Below, in pieces: positions 15,101 through 62,952 of a stretch of 64,000 bases of DNA. The notes beneath the pieces are model-generated. The model was not told the origin of the DNA. It ran no database searches and worked only from the letters and a program-made list of their open reading frames with translations. The stretch covers positions 14,042,633-14,106,632 of the forward strand of contig OZ037769.1 in assembly GCA_964035545.1 (NCBI GenBank), written 5' to 3'. Positions within the stretch are counted from its first letter, which is position 1, and each line of letters starts with the position of its first letter. A program made the translations under genes and the position numbers. Source of the stretch: Bugula neritina (lineage: Eukaryota > Animalia > Bryozoa).

Positions 15101-16379
15101 ATTTTGTATTAAATAGCATAGTTTTAGTAGCAATATACACAGCATTGTGCAGGCATAAAGTAATAAACCAAAACCTATAAATAAAAATACAACATCATTG
15201 TTAACTCAAATCAACTATTATGCAGGGGAAGACAACTCTACTACACAGTCAGAACAGTGCTAAGGAGGTTGAGTTTATCTACATACTGGAGCTTTGTTGA
15301 GAATGCTCTGCATTTCATCTCATATGTGTCGAAATTAATAACAAGCAGTTCATTTTACATATATGATATGAGCTGTACCATGGATGTGTCTTAGAATATG
15401 GCTTCTGAAAAATTCTATTTATAGCTATAAATGAACAGCAAATTTCCATGATAATATACTCTAGCGTATCAAAAGGTTCTTTCCATGCAAGCTACATTGA
15501 GCTAGCAGACACGCTTTTAAACATTAAAATTGATGAATAATTTGCATGGCATTTGCATAAAAAGTCGGCATGTTTTCATAAAAACAATTACACAAGTCAG
15601 AAGCACTCTGTGATGGATAGAAATCAATTATTTCAGAATAAAACTATTATGTCATGCAAAATTGTCTTAAATCTACAACTTTTTTATTTTTTACACCAAT
15701 ATGATGTATTTTTAGGATTTTCATTAATTTTTAAACGCTGTATTTCAACCGAGTACCTTGAAGCATTTAACTTAAGACAGCTCCCACTCTGAATATATTA
15801 TAGTACTTCTACAAGGAGTTTGATAGTCAATTAAATTGATAAAAGTGCATAACTATGAGAATTTTGCTATATATTACATTCTCTCATTAAAATTTTTTAA
15901 ATATATAAACTACTCCTATATAATATGTAATTTGGCTTAATATATAGGCAATTGTTTTTGTGCCTGCAATTAAAACTTTTATGCAGAATTGTTTGATTTG
16001 CCAACTAGAATTAAAGGTCTAATTTTACAGTTTAAAGTTTTTAAGATGAAATTTCTCGATTCCAACCATTTATAAGTTGCTTAATTATATATAACTCTAT
16101 TCTCTATAGTTTTAAAGAGCATGTACGCGATCACCTGGTGATTGCAGTTCTATAAAAAATGGTCAGTTGTAACAAGTAATGTAATTGTCTGATCGTATGA
16201 TTATCAATACTTATAAAATGAATGTATCACTCATCAAAGTATATAGAAACATGGTTAGTATCATCTGTATGTTTTGATAAAGTTGATGATGGCAAAAATA
16301 ATTTTGATTTTACTATAAGCATTTAATTTAATGCTTTACTTTGAAGATATTAGGAAGTTTATACATGATTGTGATAAAA

Positions 16380-16525
16380 GTAGTTGCTCTTAGATATATT
16401 TGCATGGTGAGCTAAAATGACACCAATGACTCATTTCTCCCTAAATATATTTGTGAGAGGCGGAAAGCTAATCAGTCAATCAATTAATCAATCAATCAAT
16501 CAATTAATCAATCAATCAATCAATT

Positions 16526-16556
<31 letters not shown>

Positions 16557-16573
16557 GAATCAATGAATCAATG

Positions 16574-16608
<35 letters not shown>

Positions 16609-19600
16609 TCAACAATTAACCAATCAATCAATCAATCGATCGATCAATCAGGCAATCAATCAATTATTTAATCAATCAATCAATATCTTTATCATTTCCA
16701 TGTGGATTCAACTCAAATAATGTTTATAAGTGTTTATAGATGTCTTTCTGCTATAGTTACACCTGACAATTTAAAGGCAGATGCAATGCATAATCACCAT
16801 TATTAGCTTAGTACCATTAAAATTGATTTGAATTTTTAGTACCAATAATAGAAAATTGTAACGCCAAGCAGCATTGTCCAAACACAAAGTTTAGGTTTGT
16901 ATCAAATTAAGTTATATATTAGTTACATATCATCAATTTGAATATATATACTGGGGTATAGTTTTGCTGGTACAATGATTTACAATTATGTTTGGTTTAT
17001 GCTTAAATTTGATGTATATAATGTAGATCTGCTTATGTAATTGATTGATTCATTGCATATCACAAACATGACTTAAAACGTTGCGAAATTCAGTGTAAAT
17101 CCTGGCTATAATATAAATAGGCATGAACAAAAATGAGAGAAAATGTCAAAACTCTAGTCAAAACTCTGTAGGAATATTTAAAATAGAAGCCCATTTAAAA
17201 TATTACAAGATGTCCCAAGAACCTATCTCTGCCCCATGCCCCTCTATATTTGATGGTTCGATATCTTCCAGAAGGCATTGACTCAAAAAGTTATTGATGA
17301 AATGGTCATTGTCTTATACTATATATTTGATGGCAAGTTCTTTAGTGAGTTTCTGAATGTGCAAATCAATGTTTAGATACTCAATCCCAAATTTTGAGCA
17401 ATTTTCAAAAATCTTTCGGATAGCCTTTTTATCACTGGCATAGACACAAGTAAAAATAATAAGTAGACAATAGACGAAGCGGGAGATGATGAAACTTTTG
17501 AATAACATATTTGCTAGAGGTTTAGAGCTAAGACACACAAAATTCTTCACAATATACATTCTTCTTGATACTGTTGTAACTATTGATTTTACATGTTCAT
17601 AAAATTTCAAGTTCTGAACCACTAACACACCAAGGTATCTCACTTTATCAGACAGTACAATGTTAGTTCTATTTAATACGAGAGTAGGGGTACGAGGTTT
17701 AGCACATTGAGCTGAGAACGTCATTTCTTGGGTCTTGCTAAGGTTTAGTAATATATATTAAAATCATCACATTGCGAGAATGCATATACTGGTTAATGTG
17801 AATTATTAAAACACTACAAATCACTTTAGGATGAATTATTATTTAAAACTGAATAAACAGGTTCAAATGTTAATGTCTAATTTAGCAGTCATTTGCTGCG
17901 ATTTTATTGTTGATATTTTATAAAATTCATGCATTACTTTTCTACACAAAATGCTCAACCTTTGATGCAGGAAGTTAGTTTACATAACTTATTTGTTAAA
18001 ACGAGAAACGACAGGGCAATTAATTTATAATGTTTTTTCACGGGCTAAAAAGATAGATTAATTTCACTTGATATTTTTGAATAAGTGCTTATAGCTTATT
18101 TGTGTTTCCAATCAGACAAATTAAAAGTGCATGCAGCCGCTATAAGTTTCAAAAATGCAACCATTGCCGCTTTTTGCAATTTTACAATTAATATTCCATG
18201 CTCAAGTGGCTATATTGTTACATATAAACTTCCTATTATACAATTATAGATGCACTAAATTAATCAAGTGCAGAAAAAAATTACAAACGAAAGTCTTACG
18301 ACTGAAAAATAGAAAATGAGAACTAATTTGTTGATTACTGGTTATTTTTTGTCTAGCCAATGCTAATAATACTATTTTCTCATTATCACATTTTGACGAA
18401 GGGAAAAGAAATGAATTGGAATAAAAAATAACTTGAATTGAAAACTTTTTTTATAAAGAACAGTAAAAAACCGAATATCTTGGCTCAAAGGTTTTGTGAA
18501 TAATAATAACAACAATATTTTTTAGCAAGTGAAATGTTAATTAACTTCTTACTGAAAGCAGTTGCTTTTAGATATATTTGATGAGCTACAAAAACACCTA
18601 TATATGACTCATTTCTCCCTAAATATATTCTGTCAGAGAGAAAGACAGCTAATCAGTCAATGAATCAATGAATCAATGAATCAATGAATCAATCAATCAA
18701 TCAATCAAACAATTAATCAATCAATCAATCGATCGATCAATCGATCAACCAATCAATGATTCAATTAGTCAATTAATCAATTAATCAATCGATCAATCAA
18801 TCAATCAATCAAACAATTAATCAATCAATCAATCAATCAAACAATTAATCAATCAATCGATCGATCAATCGATCAACCAATCAATCATTCAATTAGTCAA
18901 TTAATCAATCAATCAATCAATCGATTAATCAATGAATGTCTATATATATCATTTCAATGTGGATTCAAGTTGAATATTGTTTACAAATGTTTATAGAGGT
19001 CTTTCGTCAAGCGACACCTGACAATTTAAAAGCAGATGCAGTGCCTATCACCATTATTAGTTTGGTACCATTAAAGTTGATTTGAATTTTTAGTACCAAT
19101 AATAGAAAATTGTAACGCCAAGCAGCATTGTCCAAACACAAAATTTAGGTTTGTATCAAGTTAAGTTATAAATTGTTTACATATCATCAATTTGAATATA
19201 TACTGGGATATAGTTTTGCTGGTACAATGATTTACAATTATGTTTGGTTTATGCCTAAGTTTAATGTATTATATAATATTGTAAATATGCTTATATAGTT
19301 ATATATGTGAGAATGCATATACTGATTAATGTGGATTATTAAAACATTGCATATGAATTTAGGATGAATCACTATATTTAAAACTGAATAAAATAGGTTC
19401 AAATGTTAATGCCTAATTTAGTAGCTATTTGCTGCAATTTTATTTTTTATATGGTAGAGTCATGCTTTATTCTTCTAAAGTGTTTACGTCAAGAAATGCT
19501 TAATTTTTGATGCAGAAACTTATCATAGTTTAAAAGTTCATTTAAACTTAAAAAAATAGGGCAACTGATGCATTTTTTGTTCACGGATTTAAAAGATTGA

Positions 19601-20040
19601 TATTTTTGAATAACTGCATGCTAGCTTTGTGTTTTCAATCAGATAAAATAAAAGTGCATTCAGCCGCTAGTTTCAAAAATGCAGTCTTAGCGGCTTTTTG
19701 CAATATTGCAATCACCATTCCATGCGCAATTGTGGCAATATTGTTACATATAAACTTCCTATTATACAACTATATGCATTAAATTGATCAAAAAAAAAAA
19801 ACTCACAAACAGGAAGTCTTAATACTGAAAAATAGGAAGTTGCAACTATAATTAGTAGATTACTGGTTTAGTGTTTTGTCTAGTCAATGCATATAAATAT
19901 CATTTTCTCATTTTCACATTTTGACAAAGGGAAAAGAAATGAATTGGAATACAACAATAACAATTACTGATTTATAAACTTTTTGGAGAAAAAACAGGCA
20001 AACATTGAATATCTTGGCTCAAAGGTTTTGTAAAAATAAT
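16380..20040 (+). repeat. Diverged tandem segmental duplication (unit A ~16380-18510, unit B ~18560-20040), each with a (CAAT)n tract
   Basis: Colinear shared blocks: ATGACTCATTTCTCCCTAAATATAT, (CAAT)n, ACACCTGACAATTTAAA, TTGTAACGCCAAGCAGCATTGTCCAAACACAAA, AATATCTTGGCTCAAAGGTTTTGT. Confidence 0.9.
17040..17770 (-). mobile_element. 5'-truncated non-LTR retrotransposon (LINE) fragment, RT C-terminal region
   Basis: ORF 17314-17724(-) reads ..VLSDKVRYLGV..LKFYEHV..VSRRMYIVK..MLFKSFIISRFVYC, with upstream NLSKTQEMTF, typical of the ORF2 thumb region. The segment is absent from duplicate unit B. Confidence 0.8.
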
Positions 20041-20243
20041 AATAATAATTATTGTTTTGTAGGCCAAGTGTCAATTTATAGCTTCAATTTGCAATTGCAA
20101 TTGATATCACTTGAAAATACATATCATGGTCTTGATGAAAAAGAAATTTTAATTTGTTTTCTCATCTGTTAGGTCTAATGATCAAGCTTGTGGCGTGGCT
20201 TGGGGCTAACTATAAGCGTACAGTTAATGCATCATAACGCAGT

Positions 20244-20304: not shown

Positions 20305-20319
20305 ATGAAGTGTCTGATT
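20305..20319 (+). CDS. Initiator micro-exon of deaminase copy 1 (MKCLI)
   Basis: ACAATGAAGTGTCTGATT|GTAAGT. Phase-0 splice to AG|21149 gives signal peptide MKCLIGASLLLLAVLQHGLA/DE. Confidence 0.75.
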
Positions 20320-21148: not shown

Positions 21149-22420
21149 GGTGCATCGCTATTGCTTCTGGCAGTTCTCCAACATGGTTTAGCTGACGAGG
21201 CAGCCAAAACTAAAGCGTTATTTAAAGAGTTGGACAAAGAAACCATTCCTCCAACAATAGTAACACAGCTAGAGACCATTGCTAAAAAACTTCATAGTCT
21301 TTACAAATATCGACCAGTTACTACGTTTAAACAATGGGTTGTTGCTACTCCTTTGGTCATCGATATGGGCACGGATGGCAAAGGTCCAATAAAACTAGAC
21401 AAAGGTTCAGTTATTAAAAAAAACCAGATATTCAGTAATGTCAGGAAGAACAACTACTACCGACGGCCTGACATTTGTGACAACAGCTGTTTGAACACAC
21501 TCAACACTCTCCCAACAAAAATCAAACGCTATCTTGGTGAAGCAAATCAAATTCATACTGAAATACAGATGCTTTACAGACATAACCACAACTTAATGAC
21601 AGATGTGACAAATAAAGATAAAGTTATTCTAGTATATTCCAGGTACATTCCTTGCTCCCAGAATCAAAATAGCCAGGGCGGCGTTTTCCTTGAATGTGCT
21701 GGTGAGATGGCGAACTTTGTTGTTAATAAGAATCCTCAGAAGAACAAGTTTATTGTTTTTTATGAAACTGTACATGACAAAGAGGAAACAGTCATACCAG
21801 TATCTCAGTTGTACATGCAACTTAGTGGTATTATGTCATTTAAGTACAACCCGACCACAAAAAAAATTAAAAAAGATTCCAACTTGCTAGACAAACATAG
21901 TTATAGTTACTTGAGAAAAAAGCCAACATTCCTGCATTTTGGTCGGCCTATTTTGAATGATAACTACAAGACAACAGTTACACAATTGTTCGTCGATTGC
22001 CTTGCTCGAAATCAGTTTATTAAAGTAGCCGGCACACAGCCTCCTAACAGCAAGGAAATTATTTTTGTAGCCACAAAATATCGGCTCTACAAGGCATTTT
22101 CTATGGATGAAGATAAACTGGCTGATCTTTATACAAAAGCTAAAAATTACAAAAAGAATAAGTTTCAAAAAACAGTAGTTGAAGGTTGTTATCAATATGC
22201 CATTAAAATGGCGGCGAATGTACCTAAAAAAAAGGCAATCATTGTGCCTAAAAAAGCTACAAACTATCTCAACTTTCGGGGAACGTCTTTAGCATCCTAT
22301 GATGTCCGGAAACCAAGATTTTTAGGAGATGAGCTACAATTTTGTTATAAATTCATGGACAAGTTAAATGAATATTTTGCTATTCGTAAAGGAATAACAT
22401 GCCAAGAAAAATGGAAATAA
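21149..22420 (+). CDS. Secreted AID/APOBEC-like (SNAD-like) zinc deaminase, copy 1, main exon
   Basis: Intact frame with QWVVATPL, CDNSC, HTE (21554-21562), YSRYIPC-x13-CAGEMANF, KFIVFYE, DCLARN. AATAAA signals at ~22668 and ~22685. Confidence 0.8.
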   Translation, partial: GASLLLLAVLQHGLADEAAKTKALFKELDKETIPPTIVTQLETIAKKLHSLYKYRPVTTFKQWVVATPLVIDMGTDGKGPIKLDKGSVIKKNQIFSNVRKNNYYRRPDICDNSCLNTLNTLPTKIKRYLGEANQIHTEIQMLYRHNHNLMTDVTNKDKVILVYSRYIPCSQNQNSQGGVFLECAGEMANFVVNKNPQKNKFIVFYETVHDKEETVIPVSQLYMQLSGIMSFKYNPTTKKIKKDSNLLDKHSYSYLRKKPTFLHFGRPILNDNYKTTVTQLFVDCLARNQFIKVAGTQPPNSKEIIFVATKYRLYKAFSMDEDKLADLYTKAKNYKKNKFQKTVVEGCYQYAIKMAANVPKKKAIIVPKKATNYLNFRGTSLASYDVRKPRFLGDELQFCYKFMDKLNEYFAIRKGITCQEKWK

Positions 22421-25670: not shown

Positions 25671-27827
25671 ATGAAAATCTAATCGTTACTATATTGGCGG
25701 CTTAGAAGTTGACTGTAAGTTTACAATCTTTTAGTATTACACAATTTTTTTCTTTACAAATAATTTATTACTGTTTTTAAACTAAAATTTAAAAATAATT
25801 GGATGGTAGAGTTATTGACAAAAAAAATGTAAAATGTTTGTGTTGAAAGTTGGTGCACAAAAACCTAGCTCACTAATATAAATATTTGACAAGTTCTTCT
25901 CAAATTGTTAAGGTTAGGGCAAATCACAGATTGTGATGACACAATAATTGCATACTAATAATTAGATGTTTAATTGAAACTCTCATTTTGAGTAATTAAA
26001 CTGTAAGTACATAATATGTTCACCTAGCAAAATTAAGTATTTAAAACTTTTTGATTACAGCAAAATTCAAAAGGGATGAAATATAATATAAGTATGCATG
26101 CATATAAAGTTATTAACATTTTTTTATTTATTCTGTTAAACTTGCACTGCAATATACTAGATGCTGTAAATAGCAAGAACCTATGTACTAATTTTTGTAT
26201 GAGGCAGTTTTTGGCAGAAATATAGCATAAATTTAACTTCAATTAGTTTTCATGCTCTTATTATTTTTTGAGCCAGTCGTTTAGTTTTAAGTTCAAAGCC
26301 AGTTGTGAGCTTGTGTTTTATATATTAAGTTTTGTAAATAATGTATATGAAGGGAAGTATCCCAAAAATATTTGTGAATAGTAGAAAAAGTACAATTGGC
26401 TAAATTTCAGCAAATAACTCATCTCTACTTGATAAAAAAGTATTTTATAATTCATTTTTAGCAACGCCTATTGTATAAACTCATAAACCAATATATATAT
26501 GCTCTCTGCCTCAATTTATATTATGCAAACTCTTTATTACAAAAAGCAGTCATCTTGGTGGTGCCAGTTTTGGGGTACAGAAATGCTGTTAGTGAAAAGA
26601 AAAGCCGAGGACCTTGTGAAAATTCTAGACAAAGAAAACCTTGACGCAGATATAAAGAAGGAGCTAGAGGCTGTTGCAGAAAAACTACTTATTAGCTAGT
26701 TTGATGATAGGCCTAATAAGGGAGCTGACCAATGGGTAGCAGCGACTACTTTAAAGGTCGACCTAGGAGCAGATGGCAATGGGCCAATGAAATTGTCTGC
26801 TGATGAACTCGTGCCAAGATATCAAGTGTTTACTAACATCAAAAGCTCCAATGATGATAGAGCTGTAATCTGTAACGACGACTGCATAGCGGAAATTAAA
26901 CACTTCCAACAAAATTAAAGAAAAGAATGTCAGGCGGTCATCAGATTCACACCAAAATTCAAATGCTTTATCGGAATGACCATAACCTTTTTGCAAATGC
27001 GAATGCTAAAGACAAAGTGATTTTAGTCTTCTCACACTACATTCCATGCGCACAAGATCAAGGAGAAGCTGGTGGGACATTTACAGAGTGTGCTGGTGAA
27101 TTGGCAAACTTTCTGGTGAATGATAATCCAAACAACAACAAATTTATTGTGTTTTGGGAGAGTACTCATCGAGCTAAAAGGACTGTGGTTCCAATTGCAC
27201 AGATGTATATGGAGCTCAGTGGCATTGCTTCATTTAATTATGACAAAAAAACAAAGAAGATAAAAAAAGATCCAAGCCACTTCAAGCGCCCAGAGTATTT
27301 TAGGAACAACTCTATGCTTATTAGACTAGGCCGTCCGCTGATGTCCAACGAGTTTAAATTCACAGAGACTCAGCTTTTGGTTGACTGCATAGCCCGAAAT
27401 GACTTTTTTATGGAAACAACTAATAATAGAATATGCAAAGAAATTCAGTTTCTAGCAGCAAAAAGACAACTTTACAAAGCATTCCCCAATGGGGGCTGGG
27501 AGCTATGGCACCATAAGAGACCGTCTTGCTAAAAATTACGGCAATGACAACGTTCCTTTCAAAAAGGCTGTTGTTGAAGCGTGTATTTTGTACGCAAACG
27601 CCATGTCTATGGATGAAAATAAAAAAAATTTACTTGTTCAGGACCATACCACGGATTATCTTAATTTCTACGGCAAGAGTGTGTTGAAGGATTATTGTCA
27701 AAATCCAAAATTTCCTCAAGATTATCTTCAATATTGCAACAGTTGTTTGGCAGCAGTTGAAAGATATTTTCAAATTCCTCAACAAAAGCAAATTCAATGT
27801 CAGCTGAAAAATCCTCGTCAACACTAA
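25671..27827 (+). pseudogene. Secreted AID/APOBEC-like deaminase, copy 2, pseudogene
   Basis: Full-length homology across several frames (KAVILVVPVLG.., DQWVAATTL, CNDDC, HTK, FSHYIPC-x13-CAGELANF, DCIARN, DYLNFYG). Lesions: frameshifts near 26598, 26900 and 27488; TAG at 26697-26699; catalytic Glu to Lys at 26954-26956; acceptor apparently CAG to CAA at 26540-26542. Tentative degenerate exon 1 at 25671-25684. Confidence 0.85.
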
Positions 27828-31000: not shown

Positions 31001-31228
31001 TATATTTTATTTTTTTTATTTACATTTTTTATGAAATCCTAACTTTTAACTATATAATTATTAATGATACCATCATTATACCAATACTGTAGACAAGCTT
31101 GTATAGCACAACGCCATGCTATTAACATGCACAACGCTAGAGTTATCGTTGAGCTATCTATAAAAGCAGTTGCTTTAGAGGTAATTTTACATTCTAGTTT
31201 TAAGTTATTCTGCAGGATTCATCGCAAA

Positions 31229-31249
31229 ATGACTAATACAAGACTTTTG
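31229..31249 (+). CDS. Initiator micro-exon of deaminase copy 3 (MTNTRLL)
   Basis: AAAATGACTAATACAAGACTTTTG|GTGAGT with TATAAAA at 31159. Splices in phase 0 to 32333, giving MTNTRLLVFLFTAIIIVHRGNS. Confidence 0.75.
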
Positions 31250-32332
31250 GTGAGTGAAGACATTATTTTTTCACAATTATTATATCTAATCTAAACGAGA
31301 CTTGATGAGCTAATTTTTAAAGTTTTGCTTTTTTAAAGTATATTCACAATATTAATTTATGTTAAAAATATCCAAAGTAATGTGTTTGTCAGTTAACTTA
31401 ATATGCTTATGCAAAAGCATAAATTATATGGACTAATTTCAATATATAGCACCGTACTATGCTGTTATGCATATAGTCCACGCAAAATTGAAAATGATAT
31501 TATATTATAATATATTTAATTAAATTTTATTATTTTATACTATATATTTTATTACATTGCATTATATTATATTACATTATATTATTTTATGTTATATTAT
31601 ATTATAATATATTATATTATGTTATTCTATCTTTTAACGTATTATATTACATTATATTGTATAATATATTTTTATGAATAACTTGAATATATGCTGATTA
31701 TTGTGCTCTGTCCTAAACATTTGAGTAATTAGAAAAAAGCTTAGGATAAGCAATATATTGTATATTTACCAGTATATGTGTCCGTAAAACAATAACTTTT
31801 AAGAAGTTAAAATGATTTTCAGCCTATAAAACAAAGGTTTTGGTAAATAGTTTCTCATTCATAACTTCAACTTTGTTTGAAAAAGAATTTGGAGTTGGTT
31901 TTTCTAATAACATGAGCAAAATTTTCTTTCATAATTCTTCTGTAATAAATAATTTCCTTTAAAATGAAAATTTAACGGCCAATGTTTTAGGGCAGCAATT
32001 TATGTTACCTATAGTAACATTTTACGTGATGACAGGTTATAATTGTTATAATACAAAGAATTTTTGTTTGATCTTTAGAACTCTTTGAACCTATTCACTT
32101 TTTTCTTGAAAACTATTGCTTCCATCAAAATTATTTTATTTCAAGAAAGAAGAAAAACTGTTTAAATAGCACTCTCATATACATTTAGTTACCTATAAGT
32201 TATACATGATATATGTAGAACTTGTTTTCTAACAAAAATATAGCCTTAACAGAGAATCACATTTTTTGTTACAGTGTGATAAACTTAAGATTGCTGATAA
32301 CGTAATGTAATATTAATTAATAATTGTTTTAG

Positions 32333-33787
32333 GTCTTTCTGTTCACCGCTATCATCATTGTGCATCGCGGTAATTCAACTCCCGAAGAAGAAAAGGCAAA
32401 AGCTGATGATTTGATGAAGGAGCTTGACAAACCGCATGCAGAGATTCGTGCAACTCTGATGACTCAGTTGAAAAGAATTGCAGGGGAGCTGAGGGCATAT
32501 AATGGAGAACGCCCAAACCTTGACTATCTTCAGTGGGTAGTGGCTACTCCATTAGATATAGAGAGAAATACTGAAAGTGGTGCAGAACCGTTGATATTAA
32601 CAAAGCAAGACGTCGAAGTCGACAAACATATTTACAGTAACTTCAAGAAAAGGGAAAATACACCAAAAAAGAGAAATGACAGAAAAAAATATTGCAATGC
32701 TAATTGCATTAAAGAAATAGAAAAACTTCCAACTACAATAAAAAGAGATAACAAAGAAATGGGTAATGGTCACGTGATACACACCGAAATACAAATGCTA
32801 TGCAGAAAGAAGGAAGACAACATATTACATGATGAAGCTAACAAGAACAAAGTAATACTAGTTTACTCAAAGTACATCCCATGTTCTCAAAATCAAAATT
32901 CTCAAGGTGGAACGTTTGTAGAATGTGCCGCAGAGTTGGCAAACTTTATGGCTAATCATAATCCGAACAAAAATAAATTGATTGTGTTTTATGAAACTCA
33001 ACACACTGCCGTGGATAACAACGATCGGGATGTACAAGTTTCATCTGTGGTTGGAGTGTCACAACTTTACATGGAGATGAGTGGCATAGTAGCTTTTAAG
33101 TACACGCCAGAGAATGAAGATGAATCAGGGGGTCCGAATCCACCGAGCGTTTTGCAGAGAGATCCTCAGCTTGTTGAAAAAGCTACATACTTTCGCAAAT
33201 ATCCAAAATTTATTAATTTGGGACGACCTCTTATAAACAATGATTATAAAGCAACTATTACCCAAATTTTCATTGACTGCCTAGCTCGAAACAACTTTGT
33301 AACCCCAAAGACTAGCAAAGAATCAACGCTTGATGTACAATTCATAACTGCTAAGCATTTTCTTTCTCTGATCCCTTATGCTGAAGAAAATGACATCGAC
33401 AAATTATTTGAAATGGCTAATCAAGCAGACAGAATAACAAATAAACAAGACGCATTCATTAAAGGGTGTTACACATTTGCAAAAGATATGTCAACAGATG
33501 ACATCAAAGGAGGCCTTATAGTTCCGGAGAAGGTGGGGGATTACCTCACTTTTAATGGCTACGCTACAAAATTGAATAAATCAAAGAAGATCAATGAGCT
33601 TTCTGTAAACAGTGAAAGAGACGCCTGTGAACCATTCCTAGCTGCTCTGAAGAAATTTTTTAAGCGTGAACGTTATTTGACACCTGTATGCACGGTGAAA
33701 GATTATTCTAATAGATATTCTAATGGCAGAGGTAACAGAAGCAAGGGTAGAAATGGGGGCAGAAGAGGACGCCGACGATATAAGTAG
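32333..33787 (+). CDS. Secreted AID/APOBEC-like zinc deaminase, copy 3, main exon; Arg/Gly-rich tail
   Basis: Acceptor TTTTAG|GTC. Intact ORF with HTEIQML, YSKYIPC-x13-CAAELANF, KLIVFYE, DCLARN; ends GRGNRSKGRNGGRRGRRRYK. Confidence 0.8.
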   Translation, partial: VFLFTAIIIVHRGNSTPEEEKAKADDLMKELDKPHAEIRATLMTQLKRIAGELRAYNGERPNLDYLQWVVATPLDIERNTESGAEPLILTKQDVEVDKHIYSNFKKRENTPKKRNDRKKYCNANCIKEIEKLPTTIKRDNKEMGNGHVIHTEIQMLCRKKEDNILHDEANKNKVILVYSKYIPCSQNQNSQGGTFVECAAELANFMANHNPNKNKLIVFYETQHTAVDNNDRDVQVSSVVGVSQLYMEMSGIVAFKYTPENEDESGGPNPPSVLQRDPQLVEKATYFRKYPKFINLGRPLINNDYKATITQIFIDCLARNNFVTPKTSKESTLDVQFITAKHFLSLIPYAEENDIDKLFEMANQADRITNKQDAFIKGCYTFAKDMSTDDIKGGLIVPEKVGDYLTFNGYATKLNKSKKINELSVNSERDACEPFLAALKKFFKRERYLTPVCTVKDYSNRYSNGRGNRSKGRNGGRRGRRRYK

Positions 33788-37357: not shown

Positions 37358-38397
37358 GTGTTAGTATGTATATAATAATTATGTTGTATATAACACGTAT
37401 ATACTATATGTGTTAATATGTATATTATATGTGATCGTATATGTATTATATATATGGTTATAGAATCTATGCTACATTTGATAGAATGTATATAATAGAT
37501 TGGCTACACAACTTTTAGTGGAATGCGGATAATTTTCATTACAGTAAAGTTCACCATCTTAATAATCTCCTATAATAATATGCTTTTGCTTTCGTTATCG
37601 TTTAAATCAATAGTAAAATCCTAGTTTATTTTCTGCCGACATGCAGTGATATACGTGTGCATGGCTATTATAGCATATTGCATCATCCTTGCATCATCTT
37701 TGTGGCTATAGCTTAAAGTAATGGCATCGCGTAATGGCATCACCCTACATACTTATACAAGGTTATTACAGTCATCAACACATGTGTTGATTAAATTAAA
37801 GACGTTTGTATGCATCTTTCTGAAATAGAAAGTTTGTTTTAGATTATGTATAGAATTTTAGGACAACAAATTACTTACCATCATATTATTGTAATGTTTC
37901 AATAGGGGTTTGGCAATCTATATGTAATATTTTCTGACTTTCTAAATTATAAAAATTGTGCTTTAATAGATGTGTGTATATTTATCATCACAGACCATGA
38001 ATGTTATAGGAGAATAAATATAACAGAAGTTGCAAAAAAGCAGCTTTCCCTGAGTATCAGAAATCGCCTTATATGTCAGCCAATCACAGCAGAGAAAAAC
38101 ATAATGTTATAGCTAATATATAGCCATTAAAATACAAATAAAATTATAATGATTTAACCAAAACTTTCCAAGCAGTTTTTGGAGTAATGCTAATTAATTA
38201 TACCATCAAAATAAATTATTTAATACAATGATGAAAACACAAATGGTAAAAAGCTTTATTTACTTCTCTAGTATACCATAGAACTTTCCGCCATGTAGCA
38301 CGTATCAACTTCTGCATGACATGCAATATTTGTACAATATGAAAAAAAGTTAATTTTGACTTATAGGAAGTATTGTACTTATTTATGTGTGTTTTAG

Positions 38398-39819
38398 ATC
38401 TCAGTGTTGATCACTGTAGCCATTGTACGCCGCTGTGTTACACATTCTGAAGAAAATGCAAAAGCTAATGACTTGATGAAGGAGCTTGACAAACGGCATG
38501 CAGAGATTCGTGCAACTCTGATGACTCAGTTGAAAAGAATTGCTGGTGAGCTGAGAAGATATTATCATCAACGTCCAAACAAAGAATATAAGCAGTGGGT
38601 AGTCGCTACTCCATTAATTATAACGAGAAATACTGAAAATGGTAAGGACTCTTTGACTTTGACAGCGCAAAGTGTGGAAGAAGATAAACATATTTACAGC
38701 AATTTCAAAAGACTTCATAATCAAAATGATGAATTAAGAAGAAAATATTGTGATGAGAATTGTATTCAACGAATAGAAGCACTTACAACTAAAATAAAGA
38801 AACATCAGAGAAAACAAATGAGTGAGAACAATATAGTACACACAGAAATGCAAATGCTGTACAGAGATAAAGTTGACAATATACTACACAATAATGCTAA
38901 CAAAGGCAAAATAATACTAGTTTACTCTAAATACATTCCGTGTTCTCAAAATCAAAATTCAAATGGTGGAACGTTTGTGGAATGTGCCGGGGAGTTGGCA
39001 AACTTTATGGCTAATAACAATCCCAATGGAAATAAGCTAATCGTGTTTTACGAAACTAAACATGAAGCAGTAAATAAACACGATGGAGTTAATGTTTCAT
39101 CCGTACTTGGAGTTTCCCAACTTTACATGGAGATGAGTGACATAGTCGCGTTTAAATACACCCCAGAAGATAGAAGCAATGAGAGTAAATTAAAAAGAGA
39201 TCCTTTGCTTGTTGACATGGCCACATATTTTCGTGAGTACCCAATGTTTCTCCATTTGGGTAGACCTCTTATGAATAAAAAATGCAAAGCAACTGTTACC
39301 CAAATATTCATTGACTGCCTAGCTCGAAATAGGTTTGTAAAGTTGACAACGAATCTGATTGAAAACTCTAAAGTACGATTCATAGCTGTTAAATATTTTC
39401 TTTCTGAACTTTCACATGCAAAGGAAAATAATCTTGAAGATTTGGTTACTGCAGCTAAGAACGGTAAAAATCCAACTGATCAACAACGTGCTATTGTTGG
39501 AGGATGCCATGTTTTTGCCAAAGAAATGATTGAAGATAGTATCAAGAAACAGTACATTAAAACTGAGCGGAAGAAAACTGAATATCTCAGTTTTGATGGG
39601 ACTGCTGCAAAAACTACTGAATATTTTGATAAAGATGAGAAAGAAACTTGTAGAGCATATCTCAAAGTTCTAAATGAGCATTTTAATAGAAAAACTAGTA
39701 AAACAAATGTGTGTTTGGTAGAGCCACTTTTTAATGGTGATGATTATGAGAGGGATAAAGAGAATATTATGAGTGATAAAAAAACTGAAAATAATAATCA
39801 TATCTATGACGAATTATAG
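38398..39819 (+). CDS. Secreted AID/APOBEC-like zinc deaminase, copy 4, main exon (intact ORF but own exon 1/promoter deleted)
   Basis: Acceptor TTTTAG|ATC; HTEMQML, YSKYIPC-x13-CAGELANF; ends IYDEL*. Upstream DNA lacks the segment homologous to ~44748-46165. Confidence 0.7.
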   Translation: MSVLITVAIVRRCVTHSEENAKANDLMKELDKRHAEIRATLMTQLKRIAGELRRYYHQRPNKEYKQWVVATPLIITRNTENGKDSLTLTAQSVEEDKHIYSNFKRLHNQNDELRRKYCDENCIQRIEALTTKIKKHQRKQMSENNIVHTEMQMLYRDKVDNILHNNANKGKIILVYSKYIPCSQNQNSNGGTFVECAGELANFMANNNPNGNKLIVFYETKHEAVNKHDGVNVSSVLGVSQLYMEMSDIVAFKYTPEDRSNESKLKRDPLLVDMATYFREYPMFLHLGRPLMNKKCKATVTQIFIDCLARNRFVKLTTNLIENSKVRFIAVKYFLSELSHAKENNLEDLVTAAKNGKNPTDQQRAIVGGCHVFAKEMIEDSIKKQYIKTERKKTEYLSFDGTAAKTTEYFDKDEKETCRAYLKVLNEHFNRKTSKTNVCLVEPLFNGDDYERDKENIMSDKKTENNNHIYDEL

Positions 39820-45695: not shown

Positions 45696-45716
45696 ATGAC
45701 TCATCTAAGACTTTTG
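45696..45716 (+). CDS. Initiator micro-exon of deaminase copy 5 (MTHLRLL)
   Basis: AAAATGACTCATCTAAGACTTTTG|GTAAGT, homologous to copy 3 exon 1; TATATAA at 45626. Confidence 0.8.
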
Positions 45717-46787
45717 GTAAGTGGAGAAAATATATATTTAATGCTGATGTACTCTAAATTATATTTTAGGAAAGTAGCTATAGCTCAAAGTACTCATTAT
45801 ATGAGTTTAGTTTATGCATGGAAAGTTCCAATGATGTTTTATTTATGAATACGATGTTTTTATATGCAACTTTAGTTTACAATCAGCTATTTATTACTTC
45901 TAACAAAATTATAATGTAGGTATAGTTATAAGAGCCAACTTTATTATGAGTAAATTTGGAAGTCCATTCTTTAAAGTGTTTTGGGGACAATTGACTATAA
46001 TTTGAATGGTCTGTAAAATGTAGTATTTTGTATATTATGTGTACAACAGGTAGCAGCAGTTCAAAAGTAGCTATCTTAAACTTAGTCAGTAATATAAAAA
46101 GTTTTCGCAACATAATTCCTGATCTATACACCCCAATTTTAGTTTTGAAAATGGTAACAAAATTGTGTGTCTTTAAATTAAAGACGTTTGTATTCATCTC
46201 TCTGAAATAGATATTTTGTTTTAGATTATGTATAGAATTTTAGGACAACAAATTACGTACCATCATATTATTGTATTAATGTTTCAATAGGAGTTTGGCA
46301 ATCTATGTAATATTTTTTGACTTTCTAAATTATAAAAATTGTGCTTTAATATGATGTGTGTATTTATCATCACAGACCATGAATGTTATAGGAGAATAAA
46401 TATAACAGAATTAATTACGTTGCAAAAAAGCAGCTTTCCCTGAGTATCAAAAATCGCCTTATATGTCAGCCAATCACAACAGAGAAAAACATAATGTTAT
46501 AGCTAACATATAGCCATTAAAATACAAATAAAATTATTATGATTTAACCAAAACTTTCCAAGCAGTTTTTGGAGTAATGCTAATTAATTATACCATCAAA
46601 ATAAATTATTTAATACAATGATGAAAACACAAATGTTGTGAAGCTTTATTTACTTCTTTAGTATACCATAGAACGTTAGGTCATGTAGCACATATCAACT
46701 TCTGCATGACATGCAATATTTTTACAATATGAAAAAAAGTTAATTTTGACTTATACGAAGTATTGTACTTATTTATGTGTGTTTTAG

Positions 46788-48209
46788 ATCTCAGTGTTGA
46801 TCACTGTAGCCATTGTACGCCGCTGTGTTACACATCTTGAAGAAAATGCAAAAGCTAATGACTTGATGAAGGAGCTTGACAAACCGCATGCAGAGATTCG
46901 TGCAACTCTGATGACTCAGTTGAAAAGAATTGCTGGTGAGCTGAGTGAGTATTATAATCAACGTCCAAACCGTGCCTTTACTCAGTGGGTAGTGGCTACT
47001 CCATTGAATATAAAGAGAAATACTGAAAATGGTAAGGACTCTTTGACTTTGACAGCGCAAAGTGTGGAAGAAGACAAACATATTTACAGCAATTTCAAAA
47101 GACTTCATAATCAAAATGATGAATTAAGAAGAAAATATTGTGATAATGACTGTATTCAGCAAATAGAAACACTTACAACTAAAATAAAAAAACATCCGTG
47201 GAAACAAATAGGTGAAAACAATATAGTACACACAGAAATGCAAATGCTGTACAGAGATAAAGTTGACAATATACTACATAATGAAGCTAATAAAAATAAA
47301 GTAATACTAGTTTACTCAAAGTATATTCCGTGTTCTCAAAATCAAAATTCAAATGGTGGAACGTTTGTGGAATGTGCCGGGGAGTTGGCAAACTTTATGG
47401 CTAATAACAATCCCAATGGAAATAAGCTAATCGTGTTTTATGAAACTAAACATGAAGCAGTAAATAAACACGATGGAGTTAATGTTTCATCCGTACTTGG
47501 AGTTTCCCAACTTTACATGGAGATGAGTGGCATAGTCGCGTTTAAATACACCCCAGAAGATAGAAGCAATGAGAGTAAATTAAAAAGAGATCCTTTGCTT
47601 GTTGACATGGCCACATATTTTCGTGAGTACCCAATGTTTCTCTATCTGGGTAGACCTCTTATGAATAAAGAATGCAAAGCAACTGTTACCCAAATATTCA
47701 TTGACTGCCTAGCTCGAAATAGGTTTGTAAAGTTGACAACGAATCTGATTGAAAACTCTAAAGTACGATTCATAGCTGTTAAATATTTTCTTTCTGAACT
47801 TTCACATGCAAAGGAAAATAATCTTGGAGATTTGGTTACTGCAGCTAAGAACGGTAAAAATCCAACTGATCAACAACGTGCTATTGTTGAAGGATGCCAT
47901 GTTTTTGCCAAAGAAATGCTTGAAGATAGTATCAAGAAACAGTACATTAAAACTGAGCAGAAGGAAAATGATTATCTCAGATTTGATGGAACTGCTGCAA
48001 AAACTACTGAATATTTTGATCAAGATGAGAAAGAAACTTGTAGAGCATATCTCAAAGTTCTAAATGAGCATTTTAATAGAAAAACTAGTGAAAAAAATGT
48101 GTGTTTGGTAGAGCCACTTTTTAATGGTGATGATTATGAAAGGAATAAAGAGAATAGTATGAATGGTAAAAAAATTGAAAATAATAACCAAATCTATGAC
48201 GAATTATAG
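46788..48209 (+). CDS. Secreted AID/APOBEC-like zinc deaminase, copy 5, main exon
   Basis: Recent duplicate of copy 4. Signal MTHLRLLISVLITVAIVRRCVT; intact HTE/PC-x13-C; ends IYDEL*. Confidence 0.8.
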   Translation: MSVLITVAIVRRCVTHLEENAKANDLMKELDKPHAEIRATLMTQLKRIAGELSEYYNQRPNRAFTQWVVATPLNIKRNTENGKDSLTLTAQSVEEDKHIYSNFKRLHNQNDELRRKYCDNDCIQQIETLTTKIKKHPWKQIGENNIVHTEMQMLYRDKVDNILHNEANKNKVILVYSKYIPCSQNQNSNGGTFVECAGELANFMANNNPNGNKLIVFYETKHEAVNKHDGVNVSSVLGVSQLYMEMSGIVAFKYTPEDRSNESKLKRDPLLVDMATYFREYPMFLYLGRPLMNKECKATVTQIFIDCLARNRFVKLTTNLIENSKVRFIAVKYFLSELSHAKENNLGDLVTAAKNGKNPTDQQRAIVEGCHVFAKEMLEDSIKKQYIKTEQKENDYLRFDGTAAKTTEYFDQDEKETCRAYLKVLNEHFNRKTSEKNVCLVEPLFNGDDYERNKENSMNGKKIENNNQIYDEL

Positions 48210-49360: not shown

Positions 49361-49713
49361 AGTCTAGGGCCACATGGTGCGTATTTTCGCATGCGAAAAT
49401 TGAAATCATGGGTAGCAAAGGTGTCCACTGTACGCGTTAAGAAAACATTCGCACTTGTCGCTCAGCATTCTCAACGCAAGTGCGAATCGTCTCTGTCGTC
49501 GTCACCTAATTGGCTGGTAGTTATTCAGCAAACCCAATTTCTTTATTTTAGTGCTACATTCCAGTAAATTGCGTTTTATTGAAAGCGAGCGCGATTTAAA
49601 AATGAAAGCTTTATATATATCACTCAACGCATCACTGTCATTACAGTGGACACCTTTGCTACTTGTGATTTCAATTTTCGCATGCGAAAATACGCAACGT
49701 GTGGCCCTAGGCT
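49361..49713. mobile_element. MITE (non-autonomous DNA transposon), 353 bp with ~72-bp terminal inverted repeats
   Basis: 49361-49432 (AGTCTAGGGCCACA..GGTGTCCACTGTA) is the imperfect inverse of 49642-49713. The empty site GAAACATTTACTCAGCAC is present in the paralogous unit at ~40957-40974. Confidence 0.9.
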
Positions 49714-55195: not shown

Positions 55196-55216
55196 ATGGC
55201 ATATCTAAGACTCTGT
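55196..55216 (+). CDS. Initiator micro-exon of deaminase copy 6 (MAYLRLC)
   Basis: AACATGGCATATCTAAGACTCTGT|GTAAGT with TATATAAA at ~55122; homologous to exon 1 of copies 3 and 5. Confidence 0.78.
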
Positions 55217-56230
55217 GTAAGTTCATTATTTTACTTTCTACTTTTAGTTTTAGGTTTGTCTGATAATGATGATATCAGCTATTTTGAAGTTTCAATTTAT
55301 TTTAATTAGTAAACACCAAGGATATTTATTTTCTGCCTATGTCATACTTTTAGGTGCTAATAAAAATCGGCTTTTGCCTAAATTGCTAGTTAGAAATCAC
55401 CAAACAAAACTAAAAAACGCAGTTATTTGTCATATTTTGTTTTAATTATTTGTAGCAGTCTGTACATGGATAAAATGAGTTTGGCACAATATAAACATTT
55501 ATTGAGTTTAGTCGTTTTTTGTTCAGATTTGTTTTAAACAGAATGATTTTTTTTATGTAAATTTTCTCAGACAATTAAAAATTATTGTTGTTCAATAGTA
55601 ATGTAGGATTCTTCCACATTATAAAAGACATGTTTTAAGAGCATTCAGAAAAGTATTAAGGCATGATTTTTTATTAGGTGTATTTTTGTCTTGTGTTATC
55701 TATGGCAGTAAATGTTGTTAGAACTAAATTTAGTATATACAATTAATTTATTAAAACGTTTTTTGTTTCAAAAAATAGTTATGTTTTTGTTTCAACAGTT
55801 ACTAAATAATGTTAAAATCAACACACGGTTCTCAAATGATTAAAAACATATGTTAATTATAATCAGTTTCTAAAATAAATAAAATTTAGAATACTTGTAT
55901 TTATAAGACAGTACATACTACGAAAGTGCTTGTAAGTATGTCATTTGACATTTGGCAGATGTCTTATCAAAACATTTTTTCTTATGCTGACACGTCAGCA
56001 TATTTATAAAAGTAAATGCTACAACCCACCCTACAATAATATAAAGGCAACAGGATTTTTGAGAACTGGTAACATTGAAAATTGTTTATACAGCTAATAA
56101 TACTTTCAAATCAAGAGTTTTTATTTTGAAATCTTTGAAACTGGTCAAACTATTTAAATATTCATGCAAAATGAAAATGCTAAAAATGTATGAGGTAGCT
56201 TGAAATATTTAACCACTGATGCATTTTTAG

Positions 56231-57577
56231 GTTGTGCTGTTGGTCACCACTACCCTTTTAAGTTATGCTAATGCAGATGCTGCCTTTGAAAAAGCTAAAG
56301 CTGACGAATTGATGAAACGGCTGGACAAAAAAACTATTTCGAAGAATCTGATGAGGCAGTTGAAAAGAATTGCTGGTGAACTGAGCTGGTATTATTCTCA
56401 ACGGCCAAACCCGGACTATGCCCAATGGGTAGTGGCAACTCCTTTGGACATACAAAAAACTGGTAACAGCGATACGGATCCGTTAATTTTGACTAAACAA
56501 GATGTGGTTACTGAACACATTTACAGCAATTACAAAAAGAAAGACCCTGAAAATGACACCAAAAATGAGGAGAGAAAAAAGTTCTGCGATAATCAGTGTC
56601 TTAATAGAATAAAAAAACTTCCAACCAAAATTAAAAAAAATAGAGCGGTAATTGCCGATAGCACCGTTATACACACTGAAATCCAAATGTTATGCAGGAA
56701 AAAGGAAGACAATATACTTAAAAACGAAGCTAATAAGAACAAAGTAATACTAATTTACTCCAAGTATATTCCGTGCTCTCAAAACCAAAATTCTCAAGGT
56801 GGAACGTTTGTGGAATGCGCAGGAGAACTGGCAAACTATGTAGTTGACAAAAAAAAAAATGCTAATGGAAACAAGTTTATTGTTTTTTACGAAACTACAC
56901 ATGAAGCAACAAATGAAAACGATGGAGTAAAAGTTTCATCAGTGCTTGGGGTTTCCCAACTTTACATGGAGATGAGTGGTATTGTAGCTTTTAAATATAC
57001 GTACACATCAACTAGTGATAGGTTAGTAAGAGACCCTTTGCATATAGACAGAGCAGACTACATCCGTAAGTATCCAAAGTTTCTTAGTCTAGGACGTCCT
57101 CTCATCAGTGATAATTACAAGGCAACTTCTATTCAGATGTTTATTGACTGTCTTGCCCGAAATAGATTTCTAGGCCCAGTGACAAAAAAAGTGGATAAAT
57201 TGGAAGTGGAATTTATAACTACTAAACACTTTCTCTCGGAGTATGTTGCCAAAGATAGAAGAGACTTAAAGAAACTGTATAAAAAAATGATAGACGTTGA
57301 AAATATAAAAGCACGTGTATATGTTACTATCACAGGCTGCTATGTTTATGCTAAGAAGATGTCTGCGGATAGCATAAAAAGTGATCTTATTGTGAGAGAC
57401 AAGGAAACTGATTACCTAAACTTTAATGGCTACTACACAGAACTGAATCAAGCAAAGACTACTAGCGACTTTACTTCAGAAACAAAAAAAAATTATTGCA
57501 CTCTTTTCCTCACAAGTCTCAAAAAGTTTTTCAAACGCCAAACTGATTTACAACCTGTATGCTCAGTTGGCAATTAA
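56231..57577 (+). CDS. Secreted AID/APOBEC-like zinc deaminase, copy 6, main exon
   Basis: Acceptor TTTTTAG|GTT. Signal MAYLRLCVVLLVTTTLLSYANA/DA; HTEIQML, YSKYIPC-x13-CAGELANY, KFIVFYE, DCLARN. Confidence 0.8.
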   Translation, partial: VVLLVTTTLLSYANADAAFEKAKADELMKRLDKKTISKNLMRQLKRIAGELSWYYSQRPNPDYAQWVVATPLDIQKTGNSDTDPLILTKQDVVTEHIYSNYKKKDPENDTKNEERKKFCDNQCLNRIKKLPTKIKKNRAVIADSTVIHTEIQMLCRKKEDNILKNEANKNKVILIYSKYIPCSQNQNSQGGTFVECAGELANYVVDKKKNANGNKFIVFYETTHEATNENDGVKVSSVLGVSQLYMEMSGIVAFKYTYTSTSDRLVRDPLHIDRADYIRKYPKFLSLGRPLISDNYKATSIQMFIDCLARNRFLGPVTKKVDKLEVEFITTKHFLSEYVAKDRRDLKKLYKKMIDVENIKARVYVTITGCYVYAKKMSADSIKSDLIVRDKETDYLNFNGYYTELNQAKTTSDFTSETKKNYCTLFLTSLKKFFKRQTDLQPVCSVGN

Positions 57578-60779: not shown

Positions 60780-60803
60780 ATGATGCCATCAATAAAGCTT
60801 ATT
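60780..60803 (+). CDS. Initiator micro-exon of deaminase copy 7 (MMPSIKLI)
   Basis: ATGATGCCATCAATAAAGCTTATT|GTAAGT with TATATAA at 60711. Confidence 0.75.
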
Positions 60804-61617
60804 GTAAGTATATAGTGAGGCTATCTTAAAACATAAACAGTATTACAAATTTATAAGTTATAACCTCATTTTATTTTAATTGATTATAATAAACACTGTC
60901 AATGTGGTTAGTACAGTAATTTGACATCAAAATATTTTTTCTAATTTAATTTTGTATGTATATATTACTATAATTCAATGCTACTTATAATACATTTAAT
61001 AAATAAGTCAATATGTTCTATATACCTTTTGCGGTTATTTAGTAGAAGTATATTAAATTCTTTTCCTTATTATATAATTGTGAGATAATTATAAACCAAA
61101 ATTAAAAATAATTGAAGTTATAGTATTAAATTTCAAATCAAATTATTTTTCATGTTTATTGTTGTTCATTTATAAGATATATAAAGTGTTTGCTATAGTG
61201 CTAATTTTATTTAACATAAAGATTTTAATACTTTACCATGCTGTGCAGTTGCCGTTAATGAGCTTTTAGTAATATTTCAGTTTTATGTATGATGAACTTG
61301 TTATGACATTTAAAAAAAATTCAAACTGCATAAATAATACCCAAATTAATTGTTTGACATCAAATAATTAGCAGCAATAACCATCTTGCTAATGAAACAA
61401 AACATATTGTCTTATTTGCAAGTTGTTGTTGGAAAGTAAATTGATTGTTTATTTGCAGCTAAAAAGAAAGTGTATTACTGTGGTCTACCAAGTTGCAATT
61501 GCTTTATAGAAAGTTAAAATATTTTAGTGAAATGACGGAGTAAAGTTTTTTTTAGAGTAACTTTATTTGTATATGTATTTATAATTTTAACGCTGCTCTT
61601 CCACCTTTTGTCTTTAG

Positions 61618-62952
61618 GTTGTTTTGGTGCTTTTAAACACAATTTGGAGAAGTTGCACTGCAGATGACGATCAACAAAAAAAATTAACTAGAAAATTGAT
61701 GAAAGAACTTGATAAAGATCATGAAAACATAGATACTGATATAATGCAAAAACTGAAAAGAATTGCATCAGAATTATTTGCTTATTCCAATCATTATCGA
61801 AAAAAGTCATTTAACACGAAAAATGGTAAAAAGATTAACCAGTGGGTAGTGGCGACCCCCTTAAAAATTACAAAAACACAAGAAGGCAAGTTTATTTTGG
61901 AAAAAGAAGTTGTAGATGAGAAAAATGACATCTACTCTAACATTTTTTATAACAAAAATATTGGAAATGCTAAGTGTGATTCCACGTGCATCAATAAGCT
62001 AAATACCCTCCCAACAAGAATAAAACCAGAAATCGGAAATGGAAATTCTATACATACTGAAATACAGATGATGTACAAACACACTAAATCTATTTTGAAA
62101 GAAAAAAAATATAAAAATAGAATAATATTGGTTTACTCTACATACATTCCTTGCTCTCAGAATCAGTTTCACAATGGTGGTGTTTTTCTAGAATGCGCAG
62201 GAGAAATGGCAAATTTTGTTGTAGATAAAACTGTAAATGAAGGGAACAATCGATTTATTGTTTTTTATGAAACTGTACATAAGAAGAAGAACACAGTAAT
62301 TGAGGTATCGCAGCTCTACATGGAACTGAGTGGGATAATAGCTCTAAAGTACAACCCAAACACCGGTGACTTACGGAGAGATAAAAGACTTTTGCCAGAA
62401 TTCACAGACCACTTGAGAGATCAGCCAATGTTTCTAAGACTAAGCCGCCCTCTGTTGAATAGTACTTACCAAGCGACTGGTACTCAACTGTTTGTTGACT
62501 GTTTGGCTCGTAATAGTGTTAAAAATCATCCGCCAGAAAAAAACGTGCAATTCACAGTTGCAAAGTACCAACTCTACCACGATTTTTCTATGGGCACGAA
62601 CAAAATTGTAGATGAAAATGAAATGGACAAAGCTTTAATAGCAGCTTTGAAGAATACAGATCAATCCAAAACGCAAAAGGCTTATGCTTTAAGTTGTGGT
62701 GTGTTTGCTAAAGCTATGTTTAAAGACAAAATTAAACATGATTCGATTATAGTTGAAAAGCAGACGACTGACTATTTTTCATTTGACTCTATAAATATTG
62801 CTGCATTGACGCCTAATGAACAAATTCAAGAAAATAAATTTACTTTTAACACAAAAGATGAAATGAAAGCATGCGTTATTTCTCTTCGTAGAGCTAGAAA
62901 CCGTTTCGGATTTGACAAAACAGATCAGCTAAGTTGTAAACTTAAATCTTAA
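61618..62952 (+). CDS. Secreted AID/APOBEC-like zinc deaminase, copy 7, main exon
   Basis: Acceptor CTTTAG|GTT. Signal ..VVLVLLNTIWRSCTA/DD; QWVVATPL, CDSTC, HTEIQMM, YSTYIPC-x13-CAGEMANF, RFIVFYE, DCLARN. Confidence 0.8.
   Translation, partial: VVLVLLNTIWRSCTADDDQQKKLTRKLMKELDKDHENIDTDIMQKLKRIASELFAYSNHYRKKSFNTKNGKKINQWVVATPLKITKTQEGKFILEKEVVDEKNDIYSNIFYNKNIGNAKCDSTCINKLNTLPTRIKPEIGNGNSIHTEIQMMYKHTKSILKEKKYKNRIILVYSTYIPCSQNQFHNGGVFLECAGEMANFVVDKTVNEGNNRFIVFYETVHKKKNTVIEVSQLYMELSGIIALKYNPNTGDLRRDKRLLPEFTDHLRDQPMFLRLSRPLLNSTYQATGTQLFVDCLARNSVKNHPPEKNVQFTVAKYQLYHDFSMGTNKIVDENEMDKALIAALKNTDQSKTQKAYALSCGVFAKAMFKDKIKHDSIIVEKQTTDYFSFDSINIAALTPNEQIQENKFTFNTKDEMKACVISLRRARNRFGFDKTDQLSCKLKS

Follow-up and report, generated by a model that had tools for sequence, protein, structure and literature searches.

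Seven gene copies within a 64,000-nucleotide stretch of the Bugula neritina genome (AT-rich, 216 Mb), referred to here as the window, encode a proline-cysteine pair followed by 13 residues and a second cysteine. Does this PC-x13-C motif belong to the zinc site of a deaminase, and what might its long spacer do? The reading we prefer, with a probability of roughly 0.6, is that the motif supplies the latter half of a zinc site in a secreted AID/APOBEC-like (SNAD-like) deaminase and that the spacer is an insert in loop 5 which is probably a lid.

The array and its gene models

A six-frame scan recovers all seven motifs of the original prediction, with their spacers and in their places, on the plus strand (Table 1). 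The fuller pattern HxE-x(25,35)-PC-x13-C is found in the window six times and in none of 40 shuffles, and the canonical PC-x2-4-C form is absent from the window. HxE is kept in six of the seven copies, the exception being copy 2, in which HTK replaces HTE and an in-frame stop and frame breaks are present. The closest named proteins are EB796_007870 and EB796_007869 of B. neritina (82% identity to copy 3, 79% to copy 5).

Each copy contains a single large exon of 430–485 codons that follows an AG acceptor. Candidate initiator exons of 5–8 codons with a GTRAGT donor lie 815–1084 nt upstream of the main exon in five copies. Judged by inspection, the basic mini-exon and the hydrophobic start of the main exon in these five copies together resemble a signal peptide, and single-exon relatives have similar leaders. 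For copy 3 there is a second candidate first exon (31127-31180), and the B. neritina orthologue has an NCBI model that matches this one; the candidate listed in Table 1 follows the pattern of the other copies. Copy 4 is without an initiator exon because its duplicated block begins downstream of the copy-5 initiator exon. This 3.2-kb block (37791-40969 and 46173-49364, 94% identity) contains copy 4 in one unit and the main exon of copy 5 in the other. The amino acid differences between the two are concentrated at main-exon residues ~53-76 and ~120-142, and their spacers are identical.

Table 1. Coordinates of the array features in the window; the PC-x13-C motifs were located by six-frame scan
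Feature	Position	Strand	Remarks
Copy 1, candidate initiator mini-exon	20305..20319	+	signal-peptide start; 5 codons, GTAAGT donor, ~830-nt intron; predicted from sequence
Copy 1, main exon	21149..22420	+	remainder of signal peptide, N-terminal helix, deaminase core, C-terminal domain
Copy 1, Asn99	21437..21439	+	end of strand 2; N in 26/31; equivalent of APOBEC3A N57 inferred from model (PMC5889660)
Copy 1, HTE	21554..21562	+	His138 (putative zinc ligand), Glu140 (putative catalytic), start of helix 2
Copy 1, PC-x13-C	21650..21697	+	Pro170, Cys171, 13-residue loop-5 spacer, Cys185 opening helix 3
Copy 1, variable spacer tip	21668..21676	+	spacer positions 5-7, entropy 1.5-2.1 bits; conserved stems at 1-4 and 8-13
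Copy 1, His211	21773..21775	+	loop 7; aligned with APOBEC3G loop-7 tyrosine; F/H/Y/W in 29/31 relatives
Copy 1, C-terminal helical domain	21887..22417	+	four conserved cysteines 286, 349, 401, 420; probable disulfides
Copy 2, pseudogene	26601..27827	+	HTK, stop, frame breaks; motif 27044-27091
Copy 3	31229..33787	+	candidate exon 1 31229-31249, main exon 32333-33787, motif 32879-32926
Copy 4, main exon alone	38398..39819	+	motif 38938-38985; recent duplicate of copy 5, dS 0.08
Copy 5	45696..48209	+	candidate exon 1 45696-45716, main exon 46788-48209, motif 47328-47375
Copy 6	55196..57577	+	candidate exon 1 55196-55216, main exon 56231-57577, motif 56771-56818
Copy 7	60780..62952	+	candidate exon 1 60780-60803, main exon 61618-62952, motif 62149-62196

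An eighth array copy (L002; G000:C5:14109659-14110894) lies ~3 kb beyond the end of the window; it is inverted and intact, with a 13-residue spacer. The dN/dS ratio between copies is 0.13–0.49 where dS is measurable. Copy 2 has an intact orthologue (P0011) in another sample. With such a pseudogene and a headless duplicate, the array shows apparent birth and death, as in defence families. An assembly artefact was considered and rejected: a contig from a public run, possibly the assembly's own source, matches 3.5 kb with one difference, and orthologues occur in other samples. A search for RNA runs returned none, and the one sequencing run found behaves as genomic DNA.

To the left of the array, the window holds the last exons of an ABCA transporter (PF23321; 1203-2323), an exon for a fibrinogen C-terminal domain (PF00147; minus strand, 5113-5328) and exons encoding a small protein, rich in cysteine, that is PLAC8-like by eye and has no Pfam match (10609-11767). 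Upstream of copy 1 is a tandem duplication of ~1.5 kb (16377-20076, 76–78% identity). Its first unit is split by an intervening segment that carries a minus-strand ORF of 136 codons (17314-17724; no Pfam match).

The putative zinc site and its spacer

The proposal that the two cysteines are zinc ligands agrees with their positions, which fit the ligand sites of the deaminase fold in a predicted model and in a weak profile alignment. The AlphaFold (AF2) model of copy 1 (pLDDT 86.9, pTM 0.87) has the five-stranded alpha/beta deaminase fold, and helix 4 precedes terminal strand 5 (E202-209, H218-227, E231-236), the order of AID/APOBEC-like deaminases (AADs). His138 is predicted just ahead of helix 2, strand 3 ends just before IPC, and Cys185 is the first residue of helix 3, which is the layout of HxE and CxnC described previously (PMC5889660). 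These two features of zinc-dependent deaminases, HxE at helix 2 and CxnC across loop 5 and the start of helix 3, are present in the six intact copies. Among 31 diverse cores the H, P, C and C are invariant (31/31) and the E is found in 30. In the family profile alignment, Cys185 falls on the APOBEC3G helix-3 cysteine, a weak match (E 0.13); a PDB sequence search with a narrow profile gave no match. We consider zinc binding by His138, Cys171 and Cys185 very probable from sequence and model together, and catalysis by the array proteins likely, at a somewhat lower level of confidence.

Other positions in the core resemble AADs to varying degrees. Asn99 fits the AAD pattern of Asn or a small residue where loop 3 begins, an equivalence taken from the model. 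The loop-7 position is F/Y/W in 22 of 31 relatives and His in the window copies, in a register that rests on a weak alignment. The strand-4 arginine of classical polynucleotide deaminases is not kept, and IPC stands for SPC in all seven copies, as originally reported. The C-terminal domain of the bryozoan proteins has a confident predicted fold with no clear structural match. A death fold was rejected as its identity; the best Z is 4.1, and the death-fold rows are scattered and weak (Z 4.0 or less).

The spacer had been described as one of the best-conserved segments of the family. Its identity across the six well-separated copies (0.73, against a median of 0.41) ranks 36th of 392 13-residue windows, but this is level with the catalytic core (0.64 in the HTE region) and below strand 3 (0.79). 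The residues called invariant (Q2, Q4, G8, G9, F11 and E13) are indeed shared by all seven copies; with 16 more x13 relatives, only positions 2, 4, 9 and 13 remain invariant in the 23 sequences, and positions 8 and 11 are nearly so (22 of 23 each). Synonymous sites in the spacer are near-saturated (pS 0.65, pN 0.21, pN/pS 0.32), which indicates purifying selection on the protein rather than gene conversion. Neither gene conversion nor recent duplication was accepted as the source of the conservation, as synonymous sites approach saturation in the loop and in most pairs and only copies 4 and 5 are recent.

Between its conserved stems the spacer has a variable tip. Every one of the seven orthologue pairs has a difference at position 6 or 7 of the spacer, for which the rough joint chance is 0.016 using whole-protein identity or 0.0008 using core identity, the positions having been picked after the data were seen. 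In other AADs, loop 5 is the least variable loop. Residues 171-180 form the block of lowest pLDDT in the core (61). Conserved stems with a mobile, fast-changing tip are compatible with a lid at the pocket rim, and a lid or substrate role for the loop is plausible.

The loop might instead be a tolerated surface insert in the same zinc enzyme, with the stems kept for packing beside the cysteines and the tip drifting without function. Conservation equal to that of the neighbouring core and the low pLDDT would suit such an insert, as would a length that ranges from 9 to 16 residues with little common sequence across the family. However, no member falls below nine residues, paralogues whose synonymous sites are saturated all keep a length of 13, and four spacer residues do not vary in 23 sequences. 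We regard a functionless insert as possible but doubtful.

Relationship to known deaminases and range of the family

Structural comparisons place the copy-1 model among deaminases, with modest scores. The top 21 Foldseek rows are all APOBEC3 (E ~1e-3 to 6e-3, all above 1e-3). Deaminases fill the top 16 VIA-align rows (Z up to 9.0), and small-molecule enzymes are not separated from AID, as Rib2, dCMP deaminases, RibD and AID appear together at Z 8.4–9.0 (AID 8.4). The array proteins might deaminate free nucleosides or nucleotides outside the cell, with the long loop closing the pocket as the RibD insert does. That Rib2, dCMP deaminases and RibD head the VIA rows (Z 9.0-8.5), that the RibD insert lies in the same motif, and that a secreted enzyme can reach free nucleotides are in keeping with this idea. 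In contrast, Foldseek, sub-threshold Pfam matches and the Atlas all indicate AID/APOBEC and SNAD, a ring residue is apparently kept at the weakly aligned loop-7 position, and the window copies are basic (pI 8.0–9.6). Additionally, divergent multi-copy arrays are atypical of metabolic enzymes. A free-nucleotide substrate is unlikely in our estimation.

Inserts between the zinc cysteines have been published for AID/APOBEC-type proteins, namely SNAD3 and the cnidaria-algae and nematode clades (PMC5889660). In RibD and Tad1/ADAR an insert inside the CxxC motif caps the pocket and zinc binding is kept (PMC3239186). These inserts are at the same position, and the insert type is therefore already known. 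The original prediction presented the spacing as non-canonical and named a known family with this spacing as evidence against it, and the published inserts supply such evidence in part. RibD and Tad1/ADAR, which belong to other clades with other substrates, are a mechanistic rather than a sequence-based precedent for a lid.

No family member reaches any AAD Pfam cut-off (best 22.3 bits against 27). The sub-threshold matches are to NAD1, APOBEC_N, SNAD1, SNAD4 and APOBEC3. The expectation that motif searches would overlook the family is borne out in that canonical searches and every Pfam AID/APOBEC cut-off miss these proteins; either the insert or overall divergence may keep them under the Pfam cut-offs, and the Pfam models do align across the insert. 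The Atlas, as a lead at low recognition, ranks an unnamed, mostly mollusc cluster first, followed by SNAD1/2 and then SNAD3. The best named clusters are SNAD1/2 (feature score 0.92; TM 0.68 by row).

SNAD1/2 (PF18744, PF18745) have been described from vertebrates only and have a four-cysteine cluster in strands 5-7 and, in carp SNAD1, a short CVxxC (PMC5889660, PMC11004436). The window proteins differ from SNAD1/2 in their 13-residue spacer, an added helical domain of 175 residues, scores below the Pfam cut-off, and the lack of the cluster; copy 1 has no cysteine between 185 and 286 and its model shows a hairpin and one short helix in the region compared, while some distant members have a partial pattern. 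SNAD3 (PF18749) also has an insert between the zinc cysteines, an N-terminal helical extension and a length of ~450 aa. However, SNAD3 is restricted to ray-finned fish and has no signal peptide, whereas the window proteins have a putative one. Neither SNAD3 nor APOBEC4_like matched the family at E 0.5 or better in Pfam scans, and the Atlas score to SNAD3 is 0.76. SNAD4 (PF18750) is likewise a secreted invertebrate AAD with lineage-specific expansions, and it gives weak Pfam matches (best E 0.0013), but it is confined to sponges, has no reported loop-5 insert, and the family falls below its cut-off.

The cnidaria-algae/APOBEC4-like (PF18774) and nematode AADs, the latter compared by published description, share inserts between the two zinc cysteines (PMC5889660, PMC3239186). 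Unlike the window proteins, with their putative signal peptides, they are not secreted, and the cnidaria-algae clade is defined by a metal-binding loop-1 insert that is absent here, as there is no conserved Cys/His before strand 1 and no PF18774 match; Atlas TM is ~0.3. APOBEC3/AID resemble the window proteins in fold, HxE, the helix-3 sequence past the second cysteine, the loop-3 Asn, the aromatic before xPC and, apparently, a loop-7 ring residue. They differ in being intracellular and in having PC-x2-4-C, SWSPC and a conserved strand-4 arginine.

The 1.84-billion search, made since Pfam and word search left the protein open, gave 41 matches. They comprise proteins of 370–475 aa, of which the majority begin with signal-peptide-like leaders, as well as short forms and a cluster that includes Mytilus edulis and M. 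trossulus; members from M. coruscus and M. californianus were added subsequently. Several distant matches belong to samples with the tag BRYA16 and have animal genes, innexin for one, as neighbours; we infer that these samples are the bryozoan-dominated plastic-debris metagenomes of PMC5069773. The family is probably also present in other bryozoans. Close bacterial or viral relatives were sought and none was found, and a third word search with the core alignment gave no further members. No homology between the Mytilus and bryozoan C-terminal domains was detected (probability 0.3%), and the common part is therefore the core. Some distant relatives are in tandem pairs (L013:4196-7600, L038:7584-11320) with the entire gene, including the signal peptide, in one exon. 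P0024, P0025, P0031, P0035 and P0038 have a third cysteine inside a 10-residue spacer, and most also have strand-5-end cysteines, as in SNAD1/2.

Spacer lengths in 59 sequences are 9 (25 sequences), 10 (7), 11 (2), 13 (21), 15 (3) and 16 (1), making nine residues the commonest. Two x15 paralogues (L009, L010; G000:C5:12739588-12760400) lie 1.3 Mb from the array in the same genome; the loop that follows helix 2 is longer in them, and their ends are of low complexity, either Pro/His-rich or basic. Together the x13 and x15 proteins make up one clade with good support (100/99) within a family tree whose deeper part has long branches and no outgroup. Five short x9 forms are found at two other sites of the genome, four in a 24-kb cluster (L030, L031, L033, L036; G000:C2:32904445-32928460) and one elsewhere (L034; G000:C5:9036676-9037170). 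They have no evident signal peptide and no C-terminal domain, and two of them, at 21.6–22.3 bits on Pfam APOBEC3, are the family's closest to classical AADs.

On sequence grounds, the 13-residue spacer is a mark of the Bugula array subclade only; the suggestion that the motif may define a new clade is borne out in that the family matches no catalogued clade, but the length itself, at 9–16 residues across the family, is no signature. The family could be an ordinary, if divergent, part of a clade already described (SNAD3, SNAD1/2, SNAD4 or cnidaria-algae) and under-sampled by Pfam. The Atlas feature score to SNAD1/2, the SNAD3 insert at the same place, and the cysteines at the strand-5 end and just past it in some distant members, as in SNAD1/2, would agree with this. 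However, the Pfam scans, including those for SNAD3 and APOBEC4_like, argue otherwise, as do the CVxxC of carp SNAD1 and the missing four-cysteine cluster in the window copies, and no recognisable SNAD is among the 41 matches (motif and Pfam scans of most). We consider membership of a described clade improbable, slightly more so than a free-nucleotide substrate. As far as sequences and, in part, published descriptions allow the branches to be set apart, the family matches no catalogued AID/APOBEC branch.

Finally, a Cys171-Cys185 disulfide stapling the loop of a secreted, non-catalytic protein could draw on the predicted secretion, the other conserved cysteines and the extra spacer cysteine of some relatives, but it is very improbable, since His, Glu and both cysteines persist in short relatives without an evident signal peptide or C-terminal cysteine domain, His and Glu are conserved as much as the cysteines, and the six other cysteines (112, 116, 286, 349, 401, 420) could form three pairs of their own.

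Proposed function and significance

In the preferred reading of a lidded zinc deaminase, His138, Cys171 and Cys185 would hold Zn2+ and Glu140 would activate water for deamination of a base, for which cytosine in single-stranded RNA or DNA is the best candidate. The insert in loop 5 formed by these 13 residues would lie at the pocket rim, its conserved stems holding the two cysteines in register and its exposed, variable tip probably acting as a flexible lid with a part in the choice of substrate or partner. Most likely, the secreted enzyme would turn cytosine into uracil where nucleic acid of microbes, viruses or foulers is single-stranded. We slightly favour a polynucleotide cytosine substrate, and the chance that the lid contacts it is about even. 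An extracellular defence role, which fits the tandem birth-and-death array and the putative signal peptides, seems a little better than an even bet. The window proteins are SNAD-like in this proposed working; they do not fit any SNAD subclade as described, and the Atlas places them near SNADs.

SNAD1-3 are confined to vertebrates and SNAD4 to sponges, with neither bryozoans nor Mytilus named (PMC5889660). Catalysis by SNADs was undescribed as of PMC11004436, which also gives the route of SNAD1 to nucleic acid as unknown, and we found no later assay of SNAD activity in the literature. AADs of invertebrates that have the canonical spacing act as mutators (PMC5956068). A literature search found no paper on the present family or on the source runs.

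The zinc site is thus very likely, the insert type already known and the exact spacer length not diagnostic; the spacer by itself would not surprise a specialist, and the value lies in an uncatalogued lophotrochozoan family. New is the family itself, comprising signal-peptide AID/APOBEC-like proteins of Bugula, probably other bryozoans, and Mytilus, with short forms that have no signal peptide. Tentatively, it may be a previously unrecognised branch of secreted nucleic-acid deaminases in lophotrochozoans, akin to SNADs and bridging the gap between sponges and vertebrates, in which loop 5 became a long lid with a fast-changing, target-tuning tip and both secreted and unsecreted forms exist. Invertebrate deaminases are undercounted by motif and Pfam searches. 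The natural spacers of 9–16 residues, the secreted and short unsecreted forms and the one-exon core make the role of loop 5 and the targets of secreted deaminases easy to probe. Secreted AID/APOBEC-like enzymes in animals have so far been reported only from vertebrates and sponges, with no report of activity found, and a bryozoan and mussel family would extend them to protostomes.
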